From Chlorokybus atmophyticus (Eukaryota > Plantae > Mesostigma and Chlorokybus algae): a stretch of 64,000 nucleotides of DNA. Under the pieces are notes generated by a model that saw only the letters and a list, made by a program, of their open reading frames with translations, searched no databases and had not been told where the DNA came from. Below are positions 23,320 through 60,344 of this stretch, piece after piece. The DNA is taken from contig RHPI01001559.1 of assembly GCA_009103225.1 (NCBI GenBank), positions 4,274 to 68,273 of the forward strand, written 5' to 3'. Position numbers and translations under genes: made by a program. Positions within the stretch are counted from its first letter, which is position 1; every line of letters begins with the position of its first letter.

Positions 23320-26098
23320 ATGGCGGCGTCCGGAGGATGGAGGTTGCTGCATTGTCTTGTAGGCGTGACTGCTGTGCTGCTGCTGGTGCTGTGCGCGTCC
23401 GTCAGCCCCGCTCAGGGCTACATCGACATGGTGGTTGGCATCCACCGCCACGGCAGCAGGTGCGCAAGAAAACCAGCGTTCAGCCAGCGTTGAGCATTGC
23501 ATTGTTTGCAACGCCTGTGCATGGAATGCACCGTAAACAGCCACTTGTGCGCACATGGCAGGGCTTGGGTTTGTGGAAGCATGCAAGCCTGCATTTACGC
23601 TGTAGAGCACAGCTGTGTTGTGCTTGTGAGGTTGCACAGCATTGGTAAGGGCAAAGCTGGGCTAATTGGGCTGCTGGCGCAGGACGGTGCTGTCCAAGAA
23701 CGTGTCCACTCTGCAGGAGGGAGGCGGTGTGACGCTCACGCCCAAGGGTCAGCGCCAGCTGTACGACGTGGGGACACAATTCCGCCTACGCTACATCAAC
23801 GATACCACCTGCAACGCCTCCAACACCTGCCTTTACGACTACCCAGGTTGAAGCTTGTTGTTGCCGCACAAATAGAGGCTTGTCTGTTGCCGTGTATGCA
23901 TGTCTGCCTTGCTAAGAGTCAAAGCTTCTGCTGCATGCAATCAGCGCTTCCCCGCGATTGCAATGCAGCAGTCTACAATAGCTGTGCTTGCAGGTGATTA
24001 CTCTGCACAGTACGTGCATGTTGAGAGCTCCGGGCTGGACCGCACTTTAGTGAGCTCTGAAGCCTTTCTGATGGGGTTGTTCCCACCGACTGGCGATGCT
24101 ACTGAAGACCTTCAGGGTCAGCCTGCAGGAATCCCTGGAGGCTACCAACTAGTACCAATTTACAGGTGGGCAGTTTGCATGCATGATGTTGTGAAGTTCT
24201 CTGGCTTCTGTGCTAACTCTTGTTGCTGTGATGCACGCAGCACGAATGACACCAATGACTGGATCCTTCGCGCATACTACAATTGCCCAACATTCCTGGC
24301 CAATCTTGCAAACTTCTACAAGTGAGCAACGAGTCAAGCTGCGTGCTTGAGCATGTACAATAACCCAAACATGTTACTGTGTTGAGCCAACAACTCAGCT
24401 TTGTGTGTCTGCTTTGAGCAGTTCCACAGCATATGCAGAGGAGGCAGCTGCCACGCAGGACCTGCGCTCTTATCTTCAGCACATTCTAAACCTCCCTACG
24501 ATGCCGAACGTGGTGGACATGTACAACATCTTCGACCAGTTCAATGTATGGCAAGACGAGCGGCTCGGCATAGCGCAGCCCACCATCAGCAGTCAAGGAA
24601 TGAGCAACCTCACGGCAGCTGCTAACTGGCTTGAAACCAACCGGTACTCCCGTGCAAACATACAAAACCTCGGGGCTGGCCCGCTGCTTGCACAGGTAGG
24701 TTCAAGCTGCATTCAGGTGTTGCATGGGTCCCAGAGCATAATTGGAGCGCATATGCTACAGGTGTTGGACAGGATCAACTCAGCTATTACAGAGGATCAG
24801 ACCGAAGCCAATTCGTAAGCTGCTGTGTTTGTGCTGCAACAACTTGCATGTGTGTGTTTTACTGCGCAGCTGTATTTGATTAGCTCACAATCACTTGTCT
24901 GTGGGGAACTGGCAGGCTGATTCTGTACAGTTCACACTATCCAGTCCTGTTATCCTTCCTGGCGCTGTTTGATCTTGGACCGGGGGCGACCACGTGGCAG
25001 ACTGGTATGTTATCACTCCACGAGCCTTTACAACACATGTCTTGTGTTACTGAGCACTGTCATTTATTGGCTTGGTTCAGATGCATACCAACGTAACGCC
25101 TTTTGCAGAGATACCTGCGTATGGAGCTTTGATGGTGATTGAGCTGCACACCGATTATAATGGGCTCTGGGCCATCAAGCTTATCTATCAGGTAGTATAG
25201 CAGTATGGTGTCACCTATCATGTCAACTCGCATTTACGGGCATCCCCCCCCCCCCCNACACCGATTATAATGGGCTCTGGGCCATCAAGCTTATCTATCA
25301 GGTAGTATAGCAGTATGGTGTCACCTATCATGTCAACTCGCATTTACGGGCACCCCCCCCCCCCCCAACACACACACGCGCATGTTTAGACAGATGCATG
25401 CGAGCACGCACAAAGACACATGCACATGCGCACGGGGCCACCTTTCGAGATCAAGTCGTCTGCTTCTGCTTTCTACAGGATGGCCCAGGAGCGCCGTACC
25501 TGCCAATTCCCTTGCCATGCACAGGATCCGCGCGACAAACCGAAGTGAACGCATTGACTGGAAGCGACGGCGCGTGCGAGCTCAGTGAGTTCATCAACAT
25601 CACAGCCTCTCAGGCGTATCCGAATTCCTCTGACTGGTGCCAGGCATGCAACAACAACGCCATGAACGTGTGCAAGGCAGCACAGACGGACAACCTCAGC
25701 CAGCAGGCAAGCTGAGGCAGGATAGGACGAATAGTCGTGTTTGCATGTGAAGGTTTCCACTTGAGAGGCTCTAACTGGCGCATCTAACAGGTCACCGCTC
25801 TCGAGAGTGAGGTTGCAGCTTTTACGTGTGGGAATAATGGTGTTCCATGGAAGGTGGCGCTCACAGCCGTGCTCTGCTTCTTCGGCGGCGTACTCGCAAC
25901 AGGTGCTTATCATCATTTACTGCATGCCTGTGCAGAATGGACCGTTTGGTTGGGTGTTGGCATATGTTGAACCTGAGCAACAACATGTCTGCAACAGCTG
26001 CTGCAGCGTATATGTTGATGAAGAAGCAGGAAAGGCGATGGAAAAGCCTTGACACCTCGGGTGCAGTGCCAGTTGGCACTATGAGCGCAACTGCATAA
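23320..26098 (+). CDS. Histidine acid phosphatase (branch 2), signal peptide plus C-terminal TM and short tail (lysosomal/vacuolar type); multi-exon
   Basis: Signal peptide, then RHGSR motif, SSGLDRTLVS and LILYSSHY. A GC-AG intron (25707-25790) leads to TM VALTAVLCFFGGVLAT..AAAYMLM and tail KKQERRWK..; stop TAA at 26096-26098. Confidence 0.85.
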
Positions 26099-26770: not shown

Positions 26771-28611
26771 CAATTCGCCGTAGTAGTCCTGCTCGGGTGC
26801 TCCTTGCTTGTATAAATCACACAATAGCAAGCGTACAAAATCTGCATTGTTGCTGTCTTTTAATGCGCGAGTATGGTTGCTTTGAAAATGAACGTTAAAG
26901 CAAGCTTTCTTATCAGTCACAATTGCCTAATGGCTGATACTGTTGTGCCTCGCTTGTTAGCTTTGCCTATGAGTGCTTTCCGGTAGGTGTACAAACATGA
27001 AGCGCAATGTGCAATTGCATGAACAGTACACGTGCGCTTCGAATTTTAGTACACGTGCATGAACTGGTCCACAATATCATATACTTGCACATATATATTG
27101 CCTACAAGCTATAATGGCACTGATTTACAACCGTAGTCTTGTAGGTTAATTCTGTGGTTTATCACGTATATGCGCATGTAGTGTGAAATTGAATTCAAAC
27201 TAGCTATAAGAATTTGTTGCAAGTCGTACATGCTTATAGCATATTAACTTGCCATTACGTTTGCTTATATAATGTGTCATGAAATTATTTCGTGGTACAA
27301 GCGGTACCATGATACTGTTGATAAAGGTAAACCTTACACATAAAGGTACCCGTGTTATCTTGGTACAATAATAAGGCAACTGGCCTTGTCAACATGATTT
27401 ATGGAGGCTGAACGTGCCGATTTTAAAAAATCGTGCTTGATATCGATGTACAATTCGGTACTACTTACTGGTTAACCATCAACAGATGTATTATGTCAAC
27501 ATTAAGGTTGTTAAAATATTGGCAATACGCCTCGTAAATTGTCAAGGATCTTTGAATGCCTACTTGAAACACTCGATCGCATTGTTTGTATATTACACAT
27601 TACAATACAAGGTCGATTGGGATTTTGCATTAAAGCAAACTACTATTATGCGCCATGATGTGCGGTTAATCAAGCCAAGTTGATAAAATATACATAACTT
27701 ACATACAATGCTTATTCGCATTAATACATATGTATTCATACACGTTCACTTTGATAAATATCTGCTGCCTGCTGCAGCCCCACCTGATTAGCACGCACTT
27801 ATTCAACCTGCGTTATTGTGGTGCCCCTTGTATTATAGTTGTTGTTGTAGATATGTGCATGGTGTGAGCCACCAGTGAACGGCCTGATTTCTACAATGGA
27901 GAGTGGCTTACCGCCTTCATTGGTTGGCTATAACAACGGCGCTACAGGGCTATTGCATTGCGCTGAGATTGCATTGAAACATTATATGTGACGTGCGTAC
28001 GGGGTGCTATGACATACATTTGCAGAATGGGCATGCGCACTTTGTTGCTGCATGATCAGTATGCATGCGCGCAGTCATCAACACATATCCAACATCCTAT
28101 TACAACCGCCAGGCTATATGCCTACGCTAACCCCACTACCCGTAGCCCCAAAAATAACCCGCAGTTGCTGTCATACCTGCCACACAACCGCTGCTCCCAG
28201 AAGCCCTCAAGCGCCATAGTGGCCGCCACCACTGCTGGTGCATTGCGTACATGCTTGCATGCGTTCTACCAAACATCCTATATGCATGGACATATTGCTT
28301 GATAAACCTATGCATCCATGCGCACAAGATGCACCTTATACCATCGTAATGTATCAATTTCATGTCAAGTTGGCTAGCATGTTGCCCCGCGATGCCTATA
28401 GGGAGGGGGCTGAGAGTCTGACTATAGTGTAGGGGGGCTGACAGCCTGAGACGTACCGTCATCAAAGATCCATTTACGACACGCGACTGCTGCCAGTCCG
28501 GTCGGACCAGGCCGTTAGGCAGCGGGCGGGCGGGGTTGCTGCGCTTGTCGCCGCCGTCGCCGTTGTCGTTGCTCGGCGCCTTGACCGGAGTCCTTTTCCT
28601 GTTCCGCCACC

Positions 28612-31406
28612 ATGCCAGGCATCCTCAGCGTACGAGGTGAGCGGAGGAGCTGAGCTATGACTGTTGGCCAAGTCAGCATGGCCTAGCCAGGCTAAGCCAG
28701 GCCAGGCTAGGCCAGGCCTGCTCGGGTCCAAACTTTTGTGATATGACCTTGTCGTTGCTAGTGACCAATGCGTGCTTGCTGACACTTTTGTCTCGCTGGG
28801 CAGTGCTTTCGGCGTCGGACTTACGCCTCCATGATGGCCGTAAGTGTACAGTGAAATGCTTGCATCGCCTCTCTAGTGACGTCTTAGTCCAACAGAGTGC
28901 CTGCTTGACAAACTGTCTTTTCACGCACTGTCACCCACGTTACGCCGCTTTAACCTGTTCCCCCTCTGTCTCAATCATAACTGTGCATGTTGATAACATG
29001 AATGCATTTGGTCTTGGTTATTTAGACTGATAGTTTTTCTCGTGTTCGGGCAGCTATTAAGAACGACACTTTCATACGAGGTAAGTAAGTGCATGTGTGT
29101 TTCACAGTGGCATTTGATGTGCATTCATCATTCAACAAGGTCAACCTCAGTCTGGCCTGCATTGAAGACACTCTTTTCGGGTCTTTCCAGTGCACTTGAG
29201 CGGTCAAGAGAAGCGCACGGCCGTTGCAAAGCAAACGGCCTCACCGGTGTTCAATGAAGACTTCACGTTGTGAGAGTTAGCTTTGAGCAGTGATCTTGTT
29301 GATGGTGGTCTTGATGGTGGTGGTGGTGATGATGACTGTTGTGCAGTCCTCTTGCTTCGCTTTCGGACAAGCTGTCTGTGGCAGTGTTCAGCAGTGGCCG
29401 GTTCAGTGAAGAATTGGTTGGCTCCGTTGGTAAGTCGATCCACAAACAATTTCCGAGAACCGTGTGTCCTGACCATGCTCAATCAGCTATATAGCCCACA
29501 TTGCACTGAGCAGAGATCTCCATGCCATCTATCATCGAGTTGGGTTACCGGGACGAAGTGTTCTTGCTCACGGATGCAAAGGTATGCAAATCTATGGTCA
29601 TGTGTCGTTAGATATTCAACCGACATGTGCCATTGCCTTTGCATGCTCATTCCTTCGGCTTAGTTTGAACGTGATGCTTACACATGCCATGCAAGCTCTA
29701 CTATGCCATGTGATCATCACTCTCATACTGTTGTTCGTGGCAGACTGCTGCAGCTGGCAAAGTGCACTTGCAGCTCACTTTCACTCTAAGTGATGAGGAA
29801 CGACAGAAGCTGGAAGAGCTGGTAGGCACTGCTGCGTGCCAATCACCACCTTTGTGAAGAGTGAGTAGCATTGGTCACTGCATTTCCACTCACAACAAAC
29901 TGTTCGCACGGCAGCGTCAGCGCACGAAGCATACAGCAGCTGAGAGAGCGAGCGCCCTCAACTCGCCGTCCAACACGCCCACCAAAAACATCACCAACCC
30001 GGTATGTGCGTGCGCGAGTGTGTTCTCGTGCGTGTTCACGTGAGGCCGTGCGCATGTATGTGTCTCTGTGTGTGTTCGCATGCACACGTGTGTGCGTTCG
30101 TAGTAAGCAGTTTTGCTGCAGTGTTGCGTGTTGTGCAATTCGACACACGAGTCATGCACAATACTGGTCTGGCGCCAGACTCTCTTGCGTTGTCTTAACG
30201 CTGTTACTTACTAACACACAATGTTGTGCTCACACATTAGGCGGGGAGTGCGGTGGCCGAAGCCGTTGCGCGCGACACAATGGTTGCATTGCTCACGTTC
30301 ACAGTTTGCGAGGCACGTGTGACTGGAGGAAGGTGAGAGACAGCCAGATTTTAAGCACATTGCGTTTGCCATACTACATTTTTCCAATGGTGTCTCTTCT
30401 TCATCACCTTACGTGTTCGCGCAGGACTTTGAACATGCCAAAAGGGGAGCTCTTTGTCAGCGTGACAATGGGCGGCCAAGAAACCAACAGCGACTTTCCG
30501 TCAATGGTCAACTCCGACAAGGGCAAAACATGCCAATTGTAAGCGCAGCAACTTTATCATTATCGATGTCGTCGTCATGGCGTGGCTTGTGTGTCTGTCC
30601 TCAACATCTCTTTTCTGTTGGCAGTCCTGTTGGCTCTGCAGACACATCAATATCCTTTGCGTGCTACGATGCGACATTGGAAAGACAGCAAATAGGCACG
30701 GCCACGGTGTCCATTCCGATACTCGCGGCGCAGCCCACACAGGACCAGTGGATCCCTCTCTTGCAGGGAGGCAAGCGTGTGGGTGACGTACACCTTGTCC
30801 TTAAGTACGCTGGCATCCCAAAGGTGAGAAGCACATGATATTGAACTGTTGTTTTTGAGCTGGGTAAGTGTTGGTTTGTTGCAAGGGGGCAGAGGGGCCG
30901 TGCGCACGCGCGTGCATTCGTGTGTATGACCAGCTTGTTGGCAGATAAGTGGCAATGGGAGGCTTGTGCAGCCATTGAGCCAACAACATCAACCAGTTGA
31001 TGAGCCGGTGAAGAAGCGCGCGGGTCCGGGCAAGGGGCTTGGCATCATCGGGGCCATCCTGGCCTTCACTGGGGCCTACCTGCTCTGGCCTAAGCCCGAG
31101 TTCTACACCGTCAAGCGAGGGGACTACCTCGAGAAGCTGACTGAAGACTGCAATGACCCCAGCTCCAAGTTCTACTCGCTCAACCCTGATGTAAGCGTGT
31201 GAATGCTGGCCTCGTTGTCATGCACTCGAGTGCCATATTTGTTGTGCTTCTTGTTGCGTGTGCGTACACGTGTGTGCGAGCTGCAATGCCTGAAAGCTTT
31301 TGCGTGTTGCTGAGACTTGCTGCTCAAGGAGGTAATGACGTGTTGTTGGGTTCAGATCTGCAACCGGGACCTCATCTTTCCCGGGCAAAAGATCCGCCTG
31401 AAGTAG
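28612..31406 (+). CDS. Tandem C2 domains + single transmembrane helix + C-terminal LysM domain; 11 exons
   Basis: All junctions are GT-AG and in frame. C2A: MPGILSVRVLSASDL..KRTAVAKQTASPVFNEDFTF..LSVAVF..LVGSVEI..GKVHLQLTF. C2B: LLTFTVCEAR..LFVSVTMGGQE..ISFACYD..IGTATVSI..DQWIPL..VGDVHLVLKY. TM: GLGIIGAILAFTGAYLLW. LysM: YTVKRGDYLEKL..LNPDICNRDLIFPGQKIRLK*. Confidence 0.8.
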
Positions 31407-32118
31407 GGTGATGGACTGGATGTGGTGGGACGTCTCAGAGGTGCCTGTTGTCTGCAAGAGGTTATATACGGAGCATGTGCGCCCCTGAGCCAGCACTGTT
31501 GTTGTGGGTCAAAAAGAGAATAGACCGGAACCACCCAGACCAGCATGTTAGTGCCAGCATAATGTTGATCACTTGCACAATGAATTCCAGTAGTACGTGG
31601 CCAGCCGTGGCACAAGACACGCACACATCATGATTCGGTAGTCAACTGGAAACGCACCTATGCATCCACAGCGCTGGCTCATACCCCTGCGTCCTTGCAT
31701 TCATGCATGTCTGTATGCGTGTGCAAGTGTCCTCAAGTGCACGTGCATATACAGCTTGCTTGCCTGTCTGTCGCACAGCCTTGCACACACGTGGACAGTG
31801 TACAAAAGGGGTGTGCTACTATGTGCACTGCACGCGCATGTGTGCACACAATGGGGTTACACAACAGCACCAGGAAGGGTCGTATTGCACAGCAACAGCT
31901 TGTAATCTGGAATCCTACCAAAGCGCAGACACACTAGTAACCACCAAGTATCAATGCCAGTTTCTGTTGGGGTGAGATCGGCGGCCGTTGCGGCAGAACT
32001 TGCTGGTCGCGAGGCCATCTTGTCGATGGCAGCCCAACCGCTGACTCAACCAGCCCTGCCTCTAATCGGTGGCTGCTGCCATTCCTGTTGTGCTTCCACA
32101 CATTCACTTTAAGGATGC

Positions 32119-32466
32119 NNNNNNNNNNNNNNNNNNNNNNNNNNNNNNNNNNNNNNNNNNNNNNNNNNNNNNNNNNNNNNNNNNNNNNNNNNNNNNNNNN
32201 NNNNNNNNNNNNNNNNNNNNNNNNNNNNNNNNNNNNNNNNNNNNNNNNNNNNNNNNNNNNNNNNNNNNNNNNNNNNNNNNNNNNNNNNNNNNNNNNNNNN
32301 NNNNNNNNNNNNNNNNNNNNNNNNNNNNNNNNNNNNNNNNNNNNNNNNNNNNNNNNNNNNNNNNNNNNNNNNNNNNNNNNNNNNNNNNNNNNNNNNNNNN
32401 NNNNNNNNNNNNNNNNNNNNNNNNNNNNNNNNNNNNNNNNNNNNNNNNNNNNNNNNNNNNNNNNNC
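32119..32466. other. Assembly gap (Ns)
   Basis: Run of N followed by a poly-C tract. Confidence 0.99.
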
Positions 32467-58580: not shown

Positions 58581-60344
58581 TTAGTTGGCCATCCCGCATC
58601 CCAACACGTGCGCCTGTCCCGCCTTGCAGCACTCGGCGTACGTGGTCCACACCGAGCCGGGGCCCCAGTTGCACGCGGAAGGGTTGGGCCCGCAGTCGCG
58701 CTTCGGCCACCACGCGCTGGCGACGTAACAACCGCTGCCTCCAGGTGTGGGTGAGGGTGTGGGTGAGGGAGTGGGTGAGGGGGTAGGGGAGGGGNNNNNN
58801 NNNNNNNNNNNNNNNNNNNNNNNNNNNNNNNNNNNNNNNNNNNNNNNNNNNNNNNNNNNNNNNNNNNNNNNNNNNNNNNNNNNNNNNNNNNNNNNNNNNN
58901 NNNNNNNNNNNNNNNNNNNNNNNNTAGGGGAGGGGGTGGGGGAAGGTGTGGTGGGGTTGGAGGTGCACCCGCCTGCGAAGGCGTTGCCGGGCTTGCAGCA
59001 GGACGCCATCGTGTTGTAGACCTGCGACACAACAACAACAACAACATATTGTTAGGTCAGTGTGGACTCGTCGCTGTTGGGGTGCACAGAGCTCGACTGT
59101 GTGTTGTAGTAGTAACACAACATGTAGTTCTCACCGTGGACCAGCCGCAAGCGTCGGGGTTGTGTTCGCACGTGCCCGCCTGGGTGTTGCTAGCGGTGTA
59201 GCATCCGTATCCGGGAGCGTTGGCGGGTGTCTTTGCGGGGTAACCGATGGAGATGTCGGCGCAGTTCCAGAACTCCTCAGGGTAAGGGGCAACTCCCTGA
59301 CCGCAGTAGCCCAAGGCAGGGTTCAATGTGGGCACCTTGCCCACGGGCCAACCGGGCTTGTTGCAACTGCAGAGCAGAGTGAATCAGTCAGTCAGGATGA
59401 CGCACACACACATGAGTACACGCACACAGTAGAATAAAGACACCAATCATCCTTACTTGTTGCCAGTGAGGTAGTGCCATTGGAGTACGCATCGCTCGCA
59501 CTTGACGCTGGCGGGGAGTGTGTACTGCATCGTGTAGGTGTAGGGTCCGCCGCCGGGTGCCGCCGTGGGGAGGAACCACCACTGGCCTTTGCCATCTGAC
59601 CTCCGGAGGATGTGCTGGTTGAAGCAAGCCTGTGAAACACGACACTGGTTAGCGAGCTGAGAACGGTGGGTGGACATGTGTGAGAGTGGGTGTGTACACT
59701 TGCCTGTGTGGCCTCGTTGGTGACGCTGGGGTTGGATAGCGGGCAGAGGCGGAACTCGACTGCGCCCATGTGGTGGGATGCGATGACCACGGTGACGGTG
59801 ATGGACTGGCCCACTTGGTAGTACTTGGCAACGAGGCCGTTGGCGTACTTCCCACCCGCCTGTAATGCAGCACACTCGCTTAGTAAAAGGTATGTTGGGT
59901 TGTTATTCTAATACTCGAATATATATACGTGCGCACACACGCACCATGTGGTCCTGGTTGACGTTCCACGCATCGCCGCAGATTCCGTGCTTGCCAGCTG
60001 GCCACTTGACAGTCTGTCCGAGTGAGACCGTCTGCCCGCACAAACACAAACACATGCACAAGACCAGTTAGCGCATTGGCAGCGTGAACAGCACAAACAC
60101 AAGTACACTACAGCATCCATGCATGCAACAAGGAGGCAGCATGAAACACTTGGCAAAAACTCACCCCAACGCCACCAGCATTGAGGCAGTGCTCGCAGTA
60201 GTTGGCGGGGGCGTCCTTGTAGCCGAGGCCGAACAGGGCGTTGCGGGCCGGAGGGTCAGCCATGTAGCCGTGTGCGCTGGCGGACCAGACGCACATGCTT
60301 GAGCAGACCACCAGCATCAGCAGCCATGTCGCCGCCGCAGCCAT
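58581..60344 (-). CDS. Secreted lytic polysaccharide monooxygenase (LPMO_10 fold, AA15-like) with two 6-Cys modules and a Ser/Thr-Pro linker; N gap 58795-58924 inside the linker
   Basis: Signal peptide ..SASA then His1 HGYMADPPARN; CLNAGG; HGICGD; ASHHMGAVEFRLC; EATQACF; LPASVKCERCVLQWHYLTGN; PEEFWNCADI; stop TAA at 58583-58581. Confidence 0.88.

Follow-up and report, generated by a model that had tools for sequence, protein, structure and literature searches.

A thirteen-exon gene and its transcripts

We analysed a stretch of 64,000 nucleotides (nt) from Chlorokybus atmophyticus (GenBank assembly GCA_009103225.1, contig RHPI01001559.1, positions 4,274 to 68,273 of the forward strand; hereafter the window, to which all coordinates refer), and in particular one gene whose product combines two C2 domains, a hydrophobic segment, and a LysM domain. 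The first-pass annotation, made from the DNA letters alone, had placed this gene at 28612-31406, and these limits proved exact, with the ATG at 28612 and the stop codon TAG at 31404-31406. In the model, which was built by hand from a reading of 28000-32000, the gene has 13 exons on the + strand. All 12 introns are of the GT..AG type, and the coding sequence (CDS) of 1185 nt specifies a product of 394 amino acids (aa).

The first C2 domain (C2A) is encoded by exons 1 to 7 (28612-28636, 28804-28839, 29054-29080, 29191-29269, 29347-29429, 29514-29581, and 29744-29821), which together cover residues 1 to about 125; translation starts in a GCCACC-ATG context. Exon 8 (29915-30001) is an in-frame exon of 87 nt for a 29-aa linker, rich in Ser, Thr, Pro, and Asn, that leads to the second domain (C2B) in exons 9 (30241-30332), 10 (30425-30538), and 11 (30625-30823). 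Exon 12 (30945-31190) begins with a linker (30945-31034) that ends in the basic KKRAGPGK, continues with the hydrophobic segment (31035-31091), which is the predicted transmembrane (TM) helix, and closes with the first part of the LysM. Exon 13 (31356-31406) supplies the second part and the stop codon. The LysM (31104-31190 and 31356-31400), which contains two Cys, is split by intron 12, and the protein ends one residue after it. In the 5' untranslated region (UTR), an in-frame TGA at 28582-28584 stands 10 codons upstream of the ATG; the translation around the start reads ...SAP, a stop, PESFSCSAT, and then MPGILSVR, and there is no N-terminal extension or leader within exon 1.

Transcript evidence consisted of assembled contigs, not single long reads, from four runs (X1, X2, X3, and X6) mapped to 28000-32000 (4001 nt). 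Of the words sampled from the 3.3-kb stretch, about 0.3 were present in X1 and X2, which come from two studies; this is the share expected for a spliced mRNA. Eleven of the 12 junctions are listed in spliced contigs, and the twelfth (29269/29347) follows from adjoining pieces of X1 record 2. All junctions are carried by a single contig, X2 record 5 (1474 nt, at one depth), which includes about 40 nt of the 5' UTR, reaches 31655 with 0-1 mismatches per piece, and spans both C2 regions, the hydrophobic segment, the LysM, and part of the 3' UTR. In X1 all junctions are shared between two contigs (495 and 1034 nt), the second of which extends 50 nt into exon 8. A 3' UTR of 31407-31687 is covered by these contigs (X1 to 31687, X2 to 31655).

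These data bear on a possibility that the first-pass annotation had itself raised, namely that the LysM exons belong to a separate gene, in which case the C2 exons and the TM-LysM exons would be two neighbouring genes fused by the gene model. Because the splice 30823/30945 connects exon 11, the last of C2B, with exon 12, which holds the TM segment and the start of the LysM, and is canonical GT..AG in two studies, it speaks directly against such a separation. In addition, X2 record 5 crosses all junctions in frame, and the joint within the LysM (31190/31356) was found in X1, X2, and X6. The same exons are joined both in an independent public gene model and in X6 record 9, a single 1311-nt contig of a diverged homologue that likewise connects the C2A exons with the LysM exons. 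Nothing was found in favour of a two-gene artefact, which is effectively refuted and which we consider extremely improbable. The single transcript that had been predicted is borne out: the case for one mRNA encoding the whole protein is strong, if not absolute.

The diverged homologue also allowed coding constraint to be assessed. X3 record 8 and X6 record 9 represent a homologous transcript that is 5-10% diverged and carries the same organism label. By our own count, 27 of the 30 listed variable CDS sites of the diverged transcripts fall at third codon positions (11 further differences lie beyond those listed); by our arithmetic, 28 third-position entries among 31 listed would have a chance of ~6e-11 if changes were spread evenly over the three codon positions. 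The other three listed changes are conservative: in the linker N is replaced by S, in C2B A by S, and in the hydrophobic segment I by L. Exon 8 of the diverged transcript has an insertion of 3 nt that leaves the frame intact, and the indels of X6 (2, 2, and 3 nt) start at 31407, immediately past the stop codon. We conclude that the gene is genuinely coding and subject to purifying selection. As a separate matter, the divergence of X3 and X6 from X1 and X2, which is mostly synonymous, is consistent with the presence of cryptic species or deeply separated strains under the name 'Chlorokybus atmophyticus'.

The public model mentioned above was found with exon 12 as a phmmer query against a library of 1.84 billion representative proteins. 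The top match (P0001; jgi/Chlat1/8720/Chrsp9S08550, Chlorokybus atmophyticus, EukProt, 365 aa) is 100% identical across exon 12, and a tblastn search of the window with P0001 recovered the same exons, with 100% identity in every alignment confined to one exon and with exon 8 missing: P0001 passes from ...EEL to AGS... without the 29 aa of this exon. Since all four transcript sets contain exon 8 (joint 29820/29914 in X1, X2, X3, and X6; joint 30000/30240 in X1 and X2), the expressed protein has 394 aa and not 365, and the JGI model is probably wrong or a minor isoform. The protein-level work described below was done on P0001, whose numbering is 29 lower than that of the true protein from exon 9 on.

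Several further features were observed around the gene. Intron 4 contains a GGT/GAT-type microsatellite at 29283-29343, of which 29300-29343 was masked as repeat in the transcript mapping. Upstream, at 28003-28177, separate short X1 and X2 contigs match over 175 nt, 13 of them mismatched, before they run on into dissimilar sequence; they suggest a transcribed repeat or a paralogous element that precedes the gene, rather than its 5' UTR. Just past the 3' UTR, at 31796-31827, X1 and X2 contigs have loose ends on both sides, with about 31 nt in common with an unrelated transcript, probably a short repeat. Runs of N mark assembly gaps at 32119-32465 (347 nt, about 700 nt downstream of the gene) and at 58795-58924 (130 nt). 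An open reading frame fragment at 23900-24322 (+) has a weak, sub-threshold match to His_Phos_2 (histidine phosphatase branch 2; E 2.6e-4) and may be an exon of the neighbouring gene on that side.

C2 domains, hydrophobic segment and LysM tail

Two N-terminal C2 domains had been proposed, and both were recovered, C2A by its sequence and C2B by its fold. P0001 as a whole scores 72.2 bits against Pfam C2, over two stretches. C2A alone (residues 3-89) scores 62.5 bits (E 4.8e-17) and matches the C2A domains of synaptotagmin-3 and synaptotagmin-1 in the PDB (E 2.5e-11 to 4e-11), its nearest counterparts being the C2 domains of synaptotagmin and MCTP2. The loss of the DxD from the third Ca-binding loop of C2A, also read correctly at the outset, is evident from the alignment with synaptotagmin-3, where FSSGRFSE-E stands against YDFDRFSRHD and S, G, and E replace D, D, and D. 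In the same alignment both loop-1 Asp are retained. C2A thereby falls short of the full set of acidic Ca ligands, five across loops 1 and 3, that characterises Ca2+-dependent C2 domains. In C2B, as judged by eye, GELFV takes the place of the DPYV-type motif and the usual acidic loop residues are missing. Because most of the canonical Asp ligands are gone, membrane binding by the C2 domains would be largely independent of Ca2+.

On its own, C2B matches Pfam C2 only weakly (14.6 bits, E 0.04), and phmmer of C2B against PDB sequences gave no C2 match, returning only a chance match to carbonic anhydrase. When C2B was folded alone, the model had 8 strands, with a predicted local distance difference test (pLDDT) score of 61 and a predicted TM-score (pTM) of 0.53. 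In a Foldseek search of the PDB with this model, the best 50 matches were all C2 domains (best E 7e-5, TM-scores mostly 0.5-0.6). On the strength of this model we accept C2B as a divergent C2 fold. Pfam scans exon by exon gave sub-threshold matches only (LysM E 0.19, C2 E 0.0014), because the introns cut the domains.

The protein has a single hydrophobic segment, GLGIIGAILAFTGAYLLW, which is rich in Gly and Ala, reaches a Kyte-Doolittle mean over 19 residues (KD19) of 1.62 (next best elsewhere 1.33), and is followed by 49 residues to the C-terminus. The LysM within this tail scores 24.7 bits in whole P0001 and 27.7 bits in the tail alone, against a Pfam cut-off of 20.9. Its match ends 2 residues from the C-terminus and keeps the consensus landmarks GD-Y-L, LNP, and FPGQ-I, and the tail matches the SafA LysM in the PDB (E 0.0015). 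The LysM with two Cys at the extreme C-terminus was thus correctly recognised in the first pass, and both Cys are kept in a Mesostigma relative (P0006, see below).

Less was left of the argument for membrane topology. A TM helix after KKRAGPGK had been proposed, with the basic residues taken as a guide to its orientation; the single hydrophobic segment stands as a borderline prediction, whereas the charge argument does not hold. Each 15-residue flank of the segment contains four K/R (net charge +2 before and +1 after), and with equal numbers on both sides the positive-inside rule decides no orientation. Structure modelling did not help either: the AlphaFold model of the whole protein, made from a single sequence, was poor (pLDDT 51.5) and uninformative about the TM segment, where it showed no helix and pLDDT was under 35. 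The predicted absence of a signal peptide, on the other hand, was upheld, as the upstream TGA and a first C2 strand that begins at residue 3 leave no possibility of a leader in this exon. Because no leader precedes about 320 folded residues, we place the C2 domains in the cytosol. Because the hydrophobic segment lies so near the C-terminus, its insertion would, from general knowledge of membrane insertion, be essentially post-translational and tail-anchor-like.

Relatives and known C2/LysM proteins

Beyond P0001, the phmmer search with exon 12 gave one clear relative, Mesostigma viride Mv15066 (P0006, 176 aa). The hydrophobic-segment-plus-LysM tail of P0006 is 52% identical over 69 aa, with the same spacing and both Cys kept, and a segment of lower hydrophobicity (KD19 1.25) stands at the matching position directly before the LysM. 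The N-terminal part of P0006 is of low complexity (rich in Ala, Ser, Thr, Lys, and Pro), and Pfam finds no C2 in it; either P0006 combines this tail with another head, or its gene model is truncated. Word-index searches returned, besides P0001, one unrelated multi-domain LysM protein. Feature searches of the ESM Atlas gave weak leads to a bacterial LysM cluster (0.78) and a chlorophyte 'C2 domain-containing' cluster (0.83), and the Atlas shape search returned tandem-C2 tethers at TM-scores below 0.5 and no C2+LysM cluster. A metagenome scan with an alignment of the Chlorokybus and Mesostigma tails gave 14 loci, none of them with C2 similarity and most with the LysM repeated two or three times in a single frame, like bacterial LysM repeat proteins.

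The combination of C2 and LysM had been put forward as one not known from characterised proteins, and this claim has to be withdrawn. MIN1 of Chlamydomonas is, as described in later papers, a C2/LysM-domain protein of the eyespot proteome, and the eyespots of its mutants are miniature and disorganised (Mittelmeier et al. 2008, Eukaryot Cell 7:2100, cited in PMC3084665 and PMC3276157); a function in the attachment of the chloroplast envelope to the plasma membrane was postulated for it (PMC3084665, PMC3276157). The C2+LysM architecture was moreover catalogued by Zhang et al. in 2009 as present in green algae and moss and lost in angiosperms (PMC2728734). When compared by described layout, the Chlorokybus protein resembles MIN1 in its N-terminal C2, its C-terminal LysM, its membrane association, and its occurrence in a green alga. 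The C2 and LysM of MIN1 are also said to be separated by a transmembrane sequence. In the Chlorokybus protein, Pfam identifies both the N-terminal C2 and the single C-terminal LysM, and one TM sequence between them is present as a borderline prediction. The architecture can hence be regarded as already characterised (MIN1, 2008), though it is not common; of the two properties that the first-pass annotation thought might undo its proposal, common and characterised, only the latter applies. On this likeness of layout, we would file the gene as a putative new member of the MIN1-type C2/LysM proteins, the second C2 being its visible difference.

MIN1 acts in the eyespot, a structure that Chlorokybus does not have. 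Because Mesostigma is stated to be the sole streptophyte with an eyespot (PMC1781420), the Chlorokybus protein cannot be an eyespot factor; this difference concerns function in one species and not the protein family. The class of Zhang et al. (green algae, Physcomitrella) unites the same two Pfam families in one protein, but it is a catalogue entry that says nothing on TM segments, C2 number, or function, and Chlorokybus was not sampled. Two other Chlamydomonas proteins are informative with regard to location. EYE2, which has a LysM and one TM, is located in the chloroplast envelope region (PMC3084665), and LMR1, with two LysM, forms patches along the chloroplast envelope (10.1101/2022.05.31.493820). 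The Chlorokybus protein resembles EYE2 as a green-algal LysM protein with one TM; the transit peptide, the N-terminal position of the LysM, the thioredoxin fold, and the lack of a C2 set EYE2 apart from it. LMR1, a LysM protein at the envelope like EYE2, differs by its two LysM and its lack of C2.

Tandem cytosolic C2 domains held by a TM are likewise found in ferlins, MCTPs, and extended synaptotagmins (E-Syts), and E-Syt and MCTP clusters were the nearest in the structure search. However, Pfam finds no SMP, PRT_C, or ferlin domain in the Chlorokybus protein, and these families have no LysM. The TM of the Chlorokybus protein is C-terminal, unlike in synaptotagmins and E-Syts, where an N-terminal anchor is followed by tandem C2 domains (with an SMP in E-Syts). 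MCTPs have three or four C2 domains and a C-terminal PRT_C, as against two C2 stretches and no PRT_C match here. The plant LysM receptors (LYK/LYP) have a signal peptide, usually three extracellular LysM, and a TM with kinase or a glycosylphosphatidylinositol anchor (PMC2728734), whereas our protein has no leader, one LysM, and, according to Pfam, no kinase.

Probable location and possible role of the protein

On balance we think it probable that this expressed nuclear gene encodes a 394-aa single-pass, effectively tail-anchored protein of the MIN1 type, and that it most likely serves as a tether at the chloroplast envelope. Both C2 domains would lie in the cytosol and bind a membrane surface largely without Ca2+; the hydrophobic segment would be inserted post-translationally, and the 49-residue LysM tail would reach across the membrane and hold a glycan containing N-acetylglucosamine (GlcNAc). 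By analogy with Chlamydomonas, the setting would be the chloroplast envelope, with the LysM toward the intermembrane space and the C2 domains bridging to a neighbouring membrane. We favour the envelope because of the Chlamydomonas precedents, the lack of a transit peptide, and the moderately hydrophobic anchor. Anchors of moderate hydrophobicity are usual for tail anchors of outer membranes. Outer-envelope proteins, for their part, typically have no transit peptide (PMC3084665). Since Chlorokybus has no eyespot, the role would be that of a general plastid-surface tether or anchor. A peptidoglycan synthesis toolkit has been reported in streptophyte algae (PMC13519894, PMC9434261), and because this toolkit is reported to be full, plastid peptidoglycan, which these algae probably keep in the intermembrane space, is a natural candidate ligand for the LysM. 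As for the functions suggested in the first pass, a wall/membrane tether comes close to the published MIN1 hypothesis, and a kinase-less GlcNAc-polymer sensor finds no support here.

A number of points weigh against this interpretation. No sequence feature specifies which membrane carries the protein, the hydrophobic segment is borderline both here and in P0006, the charges that flank it do not fix its orientation, and a tail of 49 residues is long for a classical tail anchor. In the sequence searches, P0001 and one Mesostigma protein were the only clear phmmer relatives of exon 12, and the word-index searches with whole P0001, residues 268-365, and residues 1-125 returned no MIN1 or moss C2+LysM protein. 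MIN1 is described with one C2, whereas the Chlorokybus protein has a second, degenerate one. Later work in Chlamydomonas weakened the simple apposition model for MIN1 (PMC3084665). Finally, Chlamydomonas is without most peptidoglycan synthesis genes (10.1101/2022.05.31.493820), and the LysM ligand of MIN1 in that alga therefore cannot be peptidoglycan.

Two other arrangements of the protein deserve consideration. It is possible, though not what we expect, that the protein resides in the plasma membrane or the endomembrane system, where an extracellular or lumenal LysM would bind the alga's own wall or sense microbial chitin or peptidoglycan, while the cytosolic C2 domains would signal or tether without a kinase. 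The predicted topology is equally compatible with such a location, and the two conserved Cys of the LysM would suit an oxidising, extracytoplasmic compartment; that LysM domains bind chitin and peptidoglycan is established knowledge. A protein that lacks a signal peptide, has one LysM, and would insert its tail after translation is nevertheless unlike the plant LysM receptors (PMC2728734), C2 domains without most of their Ca ligands would be poor signal transducers, and the characterised green-algal LysM membrane proteins are located at the chloroplast envelope. The other arrangement, which we hold to be quite unlikely, is that the hydrophobic segment does not span a membrane and instead forms a monotopic or an in-plane anchor, or part of an interface between proteins. 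This would leave the LysM in the cytosol, as in the plant 'LysMn' class, where it would recognise proteins or glycoproteins beside the C2 domains. Plants do have intracellular LysM proteins (PMC2728734), protein-protein roles for LysM have been suggested by Chlamydomonas authors (PMC3084665), and both the low hydrophobicity (1.62; 1.25 in Mesostigma) of this Gly/Ala-rich segment and the lack of an AlphaFold helix, albeit at pLDDT under 35, would agree with it. Against it stand two points: in Chlorokybus as well as in Mesostigma the LysM is immediately preceded by a hydrophobic segment, and MIN1 is said to carry a transmembrane sequence at the corresponding position.

A wider proposal can be made, which we put forward tentatively. 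The hydrophobic segment plus two-Cys C-terminal LysM could be a portable cassette of early-diverging streptophyte algae that fixes varied cytosolic heads to the plastid outer envelope via peptidoglycan. These heads would be two C2 domains in Chlorokybus and a low-complexity region in Mesostigma, and MIN1 might be an eyespot-specialised remnant in an alga that lost peptidoglycan.

The gene itself is of little weight, being uncharacterised and already annotated, with an architecture that was described in 2008 and catalogued in 2009. Its value is comparative, in that the C2/LysM membrane design is present in an alga at the base of the streptophytes that has no eyespot. It follows that the ancestral job of MIN1-type proteins is unlikely to have been specific to the eyespot. 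Moreover, because streptophyte algae are reported to keep the peptidoglycan toolkit while Chlamydomonas lost most of it, the Chlorokybus protein would be a better choice than MIN1 for finding out whether plastid peptidoglycan is a ligand of such LysM tails.

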